Source of the DNA: Diplonema japonicum
Taxonomy: Eukaryota > Protista > Euglenozoa: Diplonemea
Assembly (NCBI GenBank): GCA_964019335.1
Contig: OZ025673.1
Span: 186,001-250,000 of the forward strand
Reading direction: 5' to 3'
Length of the DNA stretch: 64,000 nt
Below, piece after piece: positions 37,778 to 39,004 of the stretch (the stretch's first letter is position 1; each line of letters starts with the position of its first letter). Below the pieces are notes generated by a model. That model was given only the letters and a program-made list of their open reading frames with translations, did no database searches and was not told where the DNA came from. The position numbers and the translations under genes are program-made.

Positions 37778-38239
37778 TTATTTCGCTTCTTCTTCAGCAC
37801 CTTCCTCCTTCTTCTTCTTCTCAGCTTCCTTGGCTTCCTTTTCCTTCTCTTTTTCCTTTGCTTCTTCTTCTTCCTTGAGCTTTTTCTCCTCCTCTTCGCT
37901 CTTCAGGCGTTTCATATCAAATTTGTTGAGGATCAAGTTGTGCAGGGCTACCACAGACCGAAGCAGCGACCCGAGGTATGTCACCATCGTTTGATCATTC
38001 ACCTCAGTTGCCACTGCAGAGCTGTGGCGTATCAAGTGCAGAGACGGGAGGGAGTTAAAGATGTCTTGGATATAATACCTATGTTTTTTTTTTTTTAAAT
38101 ATTTATTTTCCACCCTCTTCATACAAAATGTTATGGTTTAAGGGGAGCTTCCCAGACACGACCATTTCCATGTAGTCTTTTATCTCGGTCAGCTTCGCGG
38201 CGATGGCCTTCATTCCATTTATCTTCTCCTTCACCTGGG

Positions 38240-38272
<33 letters not shown>

Positions 38273-39004
38273 CCCCCCTCCAAAAACCTGCGTTGCCAGC
38301 GATGAAACAGTGTAGTCCTGTATGTCCCTCAGAAGATGCACCACCCCGATTTCCTCCATCGGCGAGCACCGCAGCGTTGTGTTAAGGTGGGTAAACGTCA
38401 TCTGCGGTCCGGAGGTTTCATTCTCAATTTGCTCGACCGCCTTGTACGCCTACGGATTTTTTTTTTTTTTTTTTTTTTTTTTTCCCCCTTCTCCCCCACA
38501 GACCGTGCAAGGCATGCTCTCGGCAACATTGTCCTCTTCGACTCGGATGATGATGTAGACGGGATGGGCTGTGTAGTTTCTGACAAGCTCGTGGATCTCC
38601 ATGTCGTTCTGCTTAAGCTTGGGCCCGGTGCTGTACCAGCCTACTATGGCCTCCTTGGAGTTCACCTTTTTGAACATTGCGAACATGTCCTCAAGGTAGT
38701 GCTGGTCGAAGTACCAGATGGACGGGTTCTTGACGTCTTCTTCAAAAGGAACGGCGAAGGAGTTTGTGCAGTGAACCTTGCCGTTGACGTTGTGTCCCAG
38801 TAGCACGCCGACTACCCTCTTCCCGGCGCTCTTCGCGGCGAGCCTTGTGTAGTGGTCTACCGTGGACAGCAATGGCAAGCTGTGCATGAACACGTCGCTG
38901 GGCTCCTTCACCACCTCCACCTCAACCTCCACCTCTGCCTCATCGTCTTTTGCATCCAACCTCTCATCGTCCTTCGCAGGCTTCTCATCCTTTGCCGCGC
39001 CCAT
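37778..39004 (-). CDS. RPN8: 26S proteasome lid subunit Rpn8/PSMD7; 4 exons, 357 aa
   Basis: LLSTVDHY, RVVGVLLG, NSFAVPFEED and VGWYSTGPKL motifs. Introns 38503-38450, 38287-38235 and 38124-38079 restore EEIGVVHLLRDI, GKLPLNHNIL-YYIQDIFN and NDQTMVTYLGSLLRSVVALHNLI. Confidence 0.96.

Follow-up and report, generated by a model that had tools for sequence, protein, structure and literature searches.

The Rpn8 (PSMD7) gene of Diplonema japonicum, which lies on the minus strand of the 64-kb stretch of DNA analyzed here (hereafter the window), is interrupted within 38079-38503 by three A-rich segments. We conclude with good confidence that such A-tract segments are genuine U2-type GT-AG spliceosomal introns, mostly 36-67 nucleotides (nt) long and of the type published by Thakur et al. 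(RNA 2025;31:1826; PMC12621601); how they are probably spliced is proposed below. The original prediction, made from the sequence alone, had described them as tiny GT-AG introns with a poly(A) tract in place of the polypyrimidine tract. Transcript-like contigs and the transcriptome proteins P0001, P0143 and P0121 bear this out: the segments are real GT-AG introns with an A-run or a C/A-rich 3' region and without a U tract. Retained segments, an A content at background level and artefactual runs, which the prediction had named as grounds for abandoning it, were each checked and gave no reason to do so; the exact lengths of the runs are those of the assembly.

The analysis is based on 14 verified introns, 10 of which lie in the window (three in Rpn8, five in a GPR107-like gene, and those at 43457..43498 and 43586..43624) and four in the U2AF65 gene on contig C19. 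Verification relied on transcript-like contigs from two runs, X1 and X2, and on exact exon matches to transcriptome proteins of the same strain (P0001, P0143 and P0121). That X1 and X2 are RNA is no more than a guess; 42% and 29% of sampled words, respectively, came from these two runs, which are 95-99% identical to the window. We relied on transcript-verified introns because annotation by bridging open reading frames (ORFs) gave too much noise: when candidates were filtered by donor, acceptor and frame, it produced 580 antisense versus 448 sense candidates in the window, and a codon-usage score separated coding from antisense sequence poorly. All 14 verified introns begin with GT and end with AG. 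Their excision is exact and restores the reading frame, as is apparent from the X1 and X2 contigs, from the matches to P0001, P0143 and P0121, and from the continuity of Pfam profiles.

In Rpn8, exon 1 (38504..39004, with the ATG at 39004) encodes the MPN/JAB domain (Pfam JAB, E 1.7e-28) and equals residues 1-167 of P0001. It is followed by intron 1 (38450..38503; 54 nt, phase 0), which reads GTCTGTGGGGGAGAAGGGGG-A27-TCCGTAG, by the 54 codons of exon 2 (38288..38449), which match P0001, and by intron 2 (38235..38287; 53 nt, phase 0), which reads GTTTTTGGAGGGGGGAAATTT-A27-CCCAG. Both introns are missing in the X1 and X2 contigs and in P0001. Intron 3 (38079..38124; 46 nt, phase 2), which reads GTATGAAGAGGGTGGAAAATAAATATTT-A13-CATAG (also written GTATGAAGAGGGTGG...A13-CATAG), is spliced in the X1 and X2 contigs. 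The MitMem_reg profile of Pfam runs on across it, from positions 29-62 in exon 3 (38125..38234; 110 nt) to positions 64-112 in exon 4, which was taken from the ORF list and includes the stop codon (37778..38078, coding to 37781). All three introns carry a G-run after the donor, and the letters at 38079-38503 on the minus strand agree exactly with the intron sequences quoted in the original prediction.

The removal of these introns can be followed in individual contigs. Contig 8 of X2 was placed on 37759-38074, 38121-38229, 38287-38448 and 38503-38999, pieces that occupy its own positions 12-327, 328-436, 441-602 and 603-1099. Its numbering is unbroken at the first and third gaps, which are Rpn8 introns 3 and 1. 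At the middle gap, four letters are left unplaced within a masked repeat (38230-38286), which fits the exact removal of 53 nt. The small offsets at the joints arise because bases are shared by the start of an intron and the next exon, and because 38230-38286 was masked. In contig 1 of X1, the pieces at 38503 and 38074 are separated by 275 nt, which equals Rpn8 exons 2 and 3 plus the ambiguous bases.

The transcriptome proteins lead to the same result. P0001, a Trinity ORF with 100% identity, reads ...ESMPCT|AYKAVEQ... and ...SLATQ|VKEKING... over Rpn8 introns 1 and 2. This isoform keeps intron 3 and ends with ...NHNILYEEGGK* inside it; the stop codon in intron 3 thereby yields a 'complete' ORF of 264 amino acids (aa), compared to 357 aa for the predicted Rpn8. 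Transcriptome proteomes of D. japonicum will hold further truncated models of this kind. P0143 (100% identity) confirms five introns of the GPR107/GOST-like gene (53742-52717), and P0121 confirms the four introns of the U2AF65 gene. The orthologues of D. papillatum and R. humris are only 54-62% identical; a relative represented by P0122 and P0144 reaches 83-86%.

The GPR107-like introns, all on the minus strand with flanking exons that match P0143, carry A31, A18 plus A12, A19 then G, A15-CTTAG and A29-CAG, the last three as quoted in the original prediction. Intron 1 (53676..53742; 67 nt) reads GTGTGTGGG-A9-G-A7-G-A31-CCAACCCAG, intron 2 (53551..53603; 53 nt) reads GTATGTGGG-A18-TG-A12-T8-GAAG, and intron 3 (53005..53040; 36 nt) reads GTATTTGAGGGGGATT-A19-G, so that its acceptor AG consists of the last A of the run and the G. 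Intron 4 (52871..52923; 53 nt) ends in A15-CTTAG, and intron 5 (52717..52771; 55 nt) reads GTAGAGTAGGGGAAGGCGGATCC-A29-CAG. The remaining two verified introns of the window are also on the minus strand. One is C/A-rich (43457..43498; 42 nt; GTATGGGAGATGG...CGTAACAACGACACCCAACAG), has no A-run in its 3' half and is documented by the joint 43456|43499 in X1 and X2; the other is A/C-rich (43586..43624; 39 nt; GTATGCAGTGCTTTAGAAAAAAGAAAACCACACGATCAG), with its joint in X1. An A-run of at least 12 is present in 8 of the 10 verified introns of the window.

The published genome assembly was made from PacBio HiFi reads of strain YPF1604 and comprises 62.30 Mb (PMC13598402). Two DNA-like runs, X5 (about 700x) and X8, agree with the window at every letter, yet their contigs stop at the T27 runs. 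Exact lengths of A-runs, such as 27, are those of the assembly; contigs from short-read DNA-like data break at the runs. A length of exactly 27 recurs in four A or T runs of the window (38240-38266, 38457-38483, 41814-41840 and 56944-56970). We rejected an assembly artefact at this length: the histogram of run lengths has no cut-off, length 27 is only mildly over-represented, nearby lengths occur 1-3 times each, and runs extend up to 46. The fourfold occurrence of length 27 is probably due to chance.

Base composition sets the ends of the verified introns apart from their surroundings. In the last 20 nt before the AG, A accounts for 69%, C for 14%, T for 12.5% and G for 4%, so that pyrimidines make up 26.5% and a pyrimidine-rich tract is absent. 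Positions +6 to +20 contain 43% G and 35% A. In the sense-strand background, measured outside the long ORFs of the gene row in the window, A makes up 29% and T 32%, and runs of at least 10 number 18 for A and 22 for T. The intronic A excess (69% versus 29%) therefore does not reflect neutral sense-strand composition, the case that the original prediction had said would refute it. The missing pyrimidine tract is a departure from what is typical of the U2-type class rather than from a feature that strictly defines it.

The same architecture is apparent in the whole genome, where we counted patterns in 62.5 Mb on 132 contigs and used each pattern reversed as its control. The pattern GTATG-N4-30-A12-N0-8-CAG occurred 658 times versus 63 in the control, roughly a tenfold excess, while its T12 version occurred 70 times versus 40. 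The A12:T12 ratio of about 9:1 is a clean one, because A and T runs are equally common in double-stranded DNA. When counted on the de-duplicated strand, G4 between GTATG and A12 was found 195 times versus 24 in the control (8-fold), and C4 at the same place 14 times versus 15. Hence, the G-run behind the donor, which the original prediction had suggested as a cue together with the A tract, is a genuine genome-wide component.

From donor to acceptor, the introns follow a recurring layout. The donor has the form GT(A/C/T)T(G/T) and is mostly GTATG; donors seen were GTATG, GTATT, GTGTG, GTCTG and GTTTT. A G/A-rich stretch follows, usually with a G-run of 3-12. The A-run, often preceded by TT or TTT, is 13-31 long in the verified introns and reaches about 45 in the genome listing. 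After the run there are 0-9 nt, mostly C, and then C/T/A-AG. Nine verified introns have an A-run of at least 12; all of them use the first AG past the run as acceptor, which in eight is only 1-9 nt away from where the run ends. In GPR107-like intron 2 the acceptor lies 26 nt past the end of A18, beyond the second run of A12 and T8.

Most of the introns are short, 13 of the 14 measuring 36-67 nt. Short length as such is not the defining cue that the original prediction had considered, since a 1,429-nt intron with the same ends is spliced in the transcriptome. This intron of the U2AF65 gene (G000:C19:431680-433108; L008 2181-3609) starts with GTATTGTGGGG and ends with A22-CAG, and P0121 shows it spliced out. 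An inserted element may have enlarged what was once a small intron. Several antisense ORFs of 100-294 aa are found in its interior.

The A-tract introns are in substance already known. Contrary to the original prediction, which took the architecture to be undescribed, they were published by Thakur et al., who analyzed six diplonemids (PMC12621601). In D. japonicum, these authors reported 10,131 introns, each with at least 15 RNA-seq split reads; 98.33% were GT-AG, the median length was 41 nt, donors were (G)/GTATG and acceptors CAG, and eight introns were validated by reverse transcription PCR (PMC12621601). A was the most abundant base in the region of the polypyrimidine tract, and a YTRAY branch motif was found in only 13.9% of the introns (PMC12621601). 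Their study contained neither branch-point mapping nor a test of the tract, and used minigenes from other species (PMC12621601). The genome note on the HiFi assembly makes no mention of introns (PMC13598402).

Our introns do not differ in kind from those of Thakur et al.: species and feature are the same, and both sets are short GT-AG introns with a GTATG donor, a CAG acceptor and A-dominated last 20 nt. Four details seen here are absent from the main text of that paper, namely the donor-side G-run, the use of the first AG past the run (including acceptors formed by an A-run plus G), the 1.4-kb intron with the same termini, and the A12:T12 ratio of roughly 9:1 with reversed-pattern controls. 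The published treatment of the A-tract consists of a few sentences. The present analysis adds testable details to it: the G-run, the first-AG rule, independence of length, and changes in trans-acting factors that are not specific to the species.

The U1 small nuclear RNA (snRNA) starts with AUACAUACCUG (5' end ACAUACCUG), which is exactly complementary to CAG|GUAUGU and one base off the usual AUACUUACCUG (ACUUACCUG in the universal form). This 5' end pairs with the GTATG donor and has nothing in it to pair with a G-run. At least seven full copies of the U2 snRNA are present (139 bits), in which the branch-point-binding GUGUAGUA and its flanks equal the consensus, with a canonical GUAGUA region. 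We therefore rejected the divergence of U2 snRNA that had been suggested as an explanation. A search for U12 snRNA gave no match, but it was made without a positive control, and a search for SF1 with PF16275 gave no match while its positive control was also silent. Genes for U1, U2 and the signal recognition particle (SRP) RNA lie within about 3 kb (G000:C12:799002-801162; L009 1501-1660; L002 1501-1693 and 2468-2772), and this cluster recurs on contigs C12, C14, C36, C81 and C75.

U2AF1/2 and the full set of small nuclear ribonucleoproteins (snRNPs) are present in D. japonicum (PMC12621601), and we found the gene and the transcript of U2AF65, which has an RS/ULM-like N-terminus and three RRMs. 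Compared to the human protein, RRM2 has lost both RNP aromatic residues (KLFIGGL to KLVMSGF and KGYAFCEY to KACCVFEF), about 18 residues are inserted in RRM1, and the C-terminal UHM carries a long insertion. In an alignment of eight diplonemids and two plants, the RRM2 substitutions and the insertions in RRM1 and UHM were found in all eight diplonemid proteins, including those of Rhynchopus humris and Hemistasia. The divergence that the original prediction had proposed to look for in the large U2AF subunit thus exists in the RRM2 motifs, but it is not specific to D. japonicum. A species-specific change of U2AF65 was accordingly rejected as an explanation of the A-tract.

As to the mechanism, we propose that the donor is read by U1 snRNA through its 5' end ACAUACCUG, complementary to GUAUGU. 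The G-run, not being read by U1, would act as an intronic enhancer or as a spacer. The A-run would supply the branch adenosine at a permissive distance, and it would also provide a G-free, unstructured stretch that is unable to hold an AG, so that the spliceosome would take the first AG downstream of it. The reading of uridines by U2AF65 would be dispensable, or replaced, in the cis-introns of D. japonicum, while pyrimidine tracts would be kept before spliced-leader acceptors. It is reasonable to infer that a U-reading step of the U2AF65 type is not what defines the A-tract 3' splice sites. These features are in keeping with a soft partition of tasks between the signals for cis- and trans-splicing, which the cis-introns with T8 show not to be strict.

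Several observations sit uneasily with this proposal. The RNA nature of X1 and X2 is a guess, and their source is a relative (95-99% identity), of another strain. The branch point is placed in the A-run by inference, and the GUAGUA region of U2 pairs poorly with poly(A). Internal AGs before the main run are skipped (A9-G-A7-G-A31), which confines the first-AG rule to the sequence downstream of the main run. Of the 14 verified introns, five lack a long A-run: three of them are C/A- or A/C-rich, another is rich in A, and in the fifth a G12 run leads into T8. T8 adjoins the acceptor in 2 of the 14. The A-run is common, therefore, but not obligatory. Furthermore, RNA supports only one trans-splice acceptor in the window.

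Diplonema japonicum trans-splices every mRNA. The supported acceptor belongs to the OYE gene (40585..40640, minus strand), where the AG at 40586-40585 is preceded by a T-rich pyrimidine tract and where the gene carries the diplonemid spliced leader (...GTTTCTGTACTTTATT) at its 5' end: in X2, the loose end GTTTCTGTACTTTATT is joined at 40585. Upstream of four genes in the window there are pyrimidine tracts 10-25 nt long. A plus-oriented spliced leader is also joined at 39139-39143 (+), between Rpn8 and OYE and just past the AG at 39141-39142, in both X1 and X2. This joint is antisense to the entire gene row and may represent an antisense trans-spliced RNA. The pyrimidine tract about 100 nt upstream of it is the complement of the purine-rich 5' untranslated region of Rpn8.

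A more far-reaching version of our proposal would be a purine code, in which GTATG, G-run, A-run and first AG are read without U2AF65 and polypyrimidine, U/C tracts serve mainly spliced-leader acceptors, and the branch adenosine within the A homopolymer is chosen by distance and not by pairing with U2. We consider this version rather unlikely. If true, it would be a natural case of 3' splice-site definition without a pyrimidine tract or a branch consensus, and it would partition cis- and trans-splicing at the level of sequence inside the same polycistronic transcripts.

The positions of the introns bear on their age. Rpn8 intron 1 has its position in common with three other diplonemid genomes that are 67-69% identical (P0002-P0004); the ORFs of P0002-P0004 stop at ...PCTV, i.e., with GT directly after the same codon. 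The position is thus old. GPR107-like intron 3 has its position in common with P0147 of a relative. The A-runs must have arisen inside pre-existing introns, because the positions of these two introns are shared with relatives. GPR107-like introns 1 and 2 are not present in the uninterrupted ORF of 449 residues of P0147. Particular lineages may thus have gained or lost some of the A-run introns. Intron presence differs among diplonemids, with GPR107-like introns 1-2 variable and GPR107-like intron 3 and Rpn8 intron 1 shared.

An alternative explanation might be that the A-run is tolerated filler. Tiny introns would then need only GTATG, a minimum length and AG, and their interior would have drifted by replication slippage under selection against U-rich tracts, which could be cryptic spliced-leader acceptors, and against G, which would make premature AGs; the diplonemid theme would be avoidance of U instead of preference for A, with a soft 'two-code' split between cis and trans. 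We regard this as possible but doubtful, and it is not exclusive of the mechanism that we propose. It is consistent with the preference of other diplonemids for C over U in the same region (PMC12621601), with the richness of the non-coding DNA in homopolymers (189 A, T, G or C runs of at least 10 in the window), with the low T content of the last 20 nt (12.5% versus 32% in the background), and with the pyrimidine tracts before genes and before the one confirmed spliced-leader acceptor. Yet, two of the 14 verified cis-introns have T8 right before the acceptor, and U tracts are evidently not forbidden, because GTATG..T12..CAG is mildly above its control (70 versus 40). Moreover, drift alone leaves unexplained why the filler is A and not an A/C mix, why the run has a fixed place beside the 3' splice site, and why the donor-side G-run is found 8 times over control.

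It is unlikely that the A-run is read by a dedicated protein that recruits the U2 snRNP, either a U2AF65 of changed specificity or an A-binding RRM protein of the PABP type. The loss of both RNP aromatic residues in RRM2 and the insertion of about 18 residues in RRM1 could point in this direction, as could the retention of U2AF although the cis-introns lack U tracts (PMC12621601). However, the RRM2 changes do not track the A-tract: they occur in all eight diplonemids, among them Rhynchopus and Hemistasia, which have C-rich or non-canonical introns. In addition, no candidate A-binding splicing factor was identified, and splicing in the same genes also removes introns that have no A-run. An A-binding factor for the A-runs is thus pure conjecture. 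Far less probable still, and largely refuted, is the reading in which the introns were inserted recently, either by a mobile 'introner'-like element or as short retro-copies with poly(A) tails. Rpn8 intron 2 does resemble a candidate intron in the CCDC113 gene of the window, GT(T/A)TTTGGAGGG...A27-CCCAG, four runs of the window share the length of exactly 27, and GPR107-like introns 1 and 2 are missing from the uninterrupted ORF of a relative. But only 3 loci in the 62.5 Mb have GTWTTTGGAGGG with A12 behind it, the interiors all differ among the 100 genome-wide matches listed, and the position of Rpn8 intron 1 is common to three genomes of 67-69% identity and that of GPR107-like intron 3 to one relative. 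We rejected a repeat-family origin on the grounds that the shared motif is restricted to 3 loci and that the interiors of the listed genome-wide matches are unrelated. Finally, there is next to no chance that the segments are not introns at all but assembly artefacts or translated low-complexity lysine/glycine inserts. The failure of DNA-run contigs to bridge the A-runs might suggest the former, and the CCDC113 segment, which is in frame and without a stop codon, the latter. Against both, the three Rpn8 and five GPR107-like segments are absent from transcripts or transcriptome proteins, most segments shift the frame or hold stop codons, the same tracts occur in an independent Illumina draft assembly (PMC12621601), and the present assembly is based on PacBio HiFi reads (PMC13598402). 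For 13 of the 14 verified introns this explanation is already refuted.

Recognition of 3' splice sites by proteins of the U2AF65 type usually reads a U-rich or pyrimidine tract, in almost all eukaryotes. Saccharomyces cerevisiae can do without the polypyrimidine tract; its introns are cut at the first AG that follows the branch point, and their donor is GUAUGU. In small vertebrate introns, G-triplets near the donor help to define the intron borders. Yeast introns have a strong branch-point consensus and vertebrate introns a pyrimidine tract, whereas those of D. japonicum have neither, only the A-run. Like U12-type introns, they lack a polypyrimidine tract, and their branch site is expected near the 3' splice site. 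In contrast to that class, their donors are GTATG then G/T and not RTATCCTT (0/14), they contain no TCCTTAAC branch box, and U1 and U2 match the donors. Of the hallmarks of the U12 type (RTATCCTT donor, TCCTTAAC box, U12/U11 snRNAs), the donor is absent from all 14 introns, and U12 snRNA gave no match in a search that lacked a positive control. The non-conventional introns of euglenozoans have ends other than GT-AG that pair with each other; the introns of D. japonicum differ from them, as their ends are GT-AG and their interiors, largely made up of G- and A-runs, are unable to pair.

Introns of Lacrimia, Rhynchopus, Sulcionema and Paradiplonema papillatum resemble those of D. japonicum in being short and GT-AG, with GTATG-type donors and a U-poor 3' region. 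Other Diplonemidae also share the positions of Rpn8 intron 1 and GPR107-like intron 3 and the unusual RRM2 of U2AF65. Their tract, however, is C-rich, whereas that of D. japonicum is an A homopolymer; L. lanifica and R. humris show a weak enrichment of A in the 3' region (PMC12621601). A free-living protist that routinely swaps the pyrimidine tract for a purine homopolymer offers a natural experiment on the minimal needs of the spliceosome; this one has kept canonical U1 and U2 snRNAs and U2AF. In practical terms, gene finders trained on pyrimidine tracts will miss A-tract introns. BUSCO completeness of the published assembly is only 30.8% versus a generic set (PMC13598402).

The candidate intron of CCDC113 (41809..41853, minus strand; 45 nt) reads GTATTTTGGAGGG-A27-CCCAG and has the same architecture as the verified introns. 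It is in frame and without a stop codon, and the exon upstream of it holds positions 2-153 of the Pfam profile CCDC113_CCDC96_CC. No transcript contig piece lies across 41809..41853, and neither reads nor Pfam read-through confirmed its removal.

Nearly all long ORFs between 0.3 and 57.5 kb of the window are on the minus strand, and this row of genes stops near 57.5 kb. Over 52000-64000, GC drops to 33-41%, compared to about 50% before, and A/T homopolymers become very dense. Possibly, this part of the window is a strand-switch or gene-poor region.

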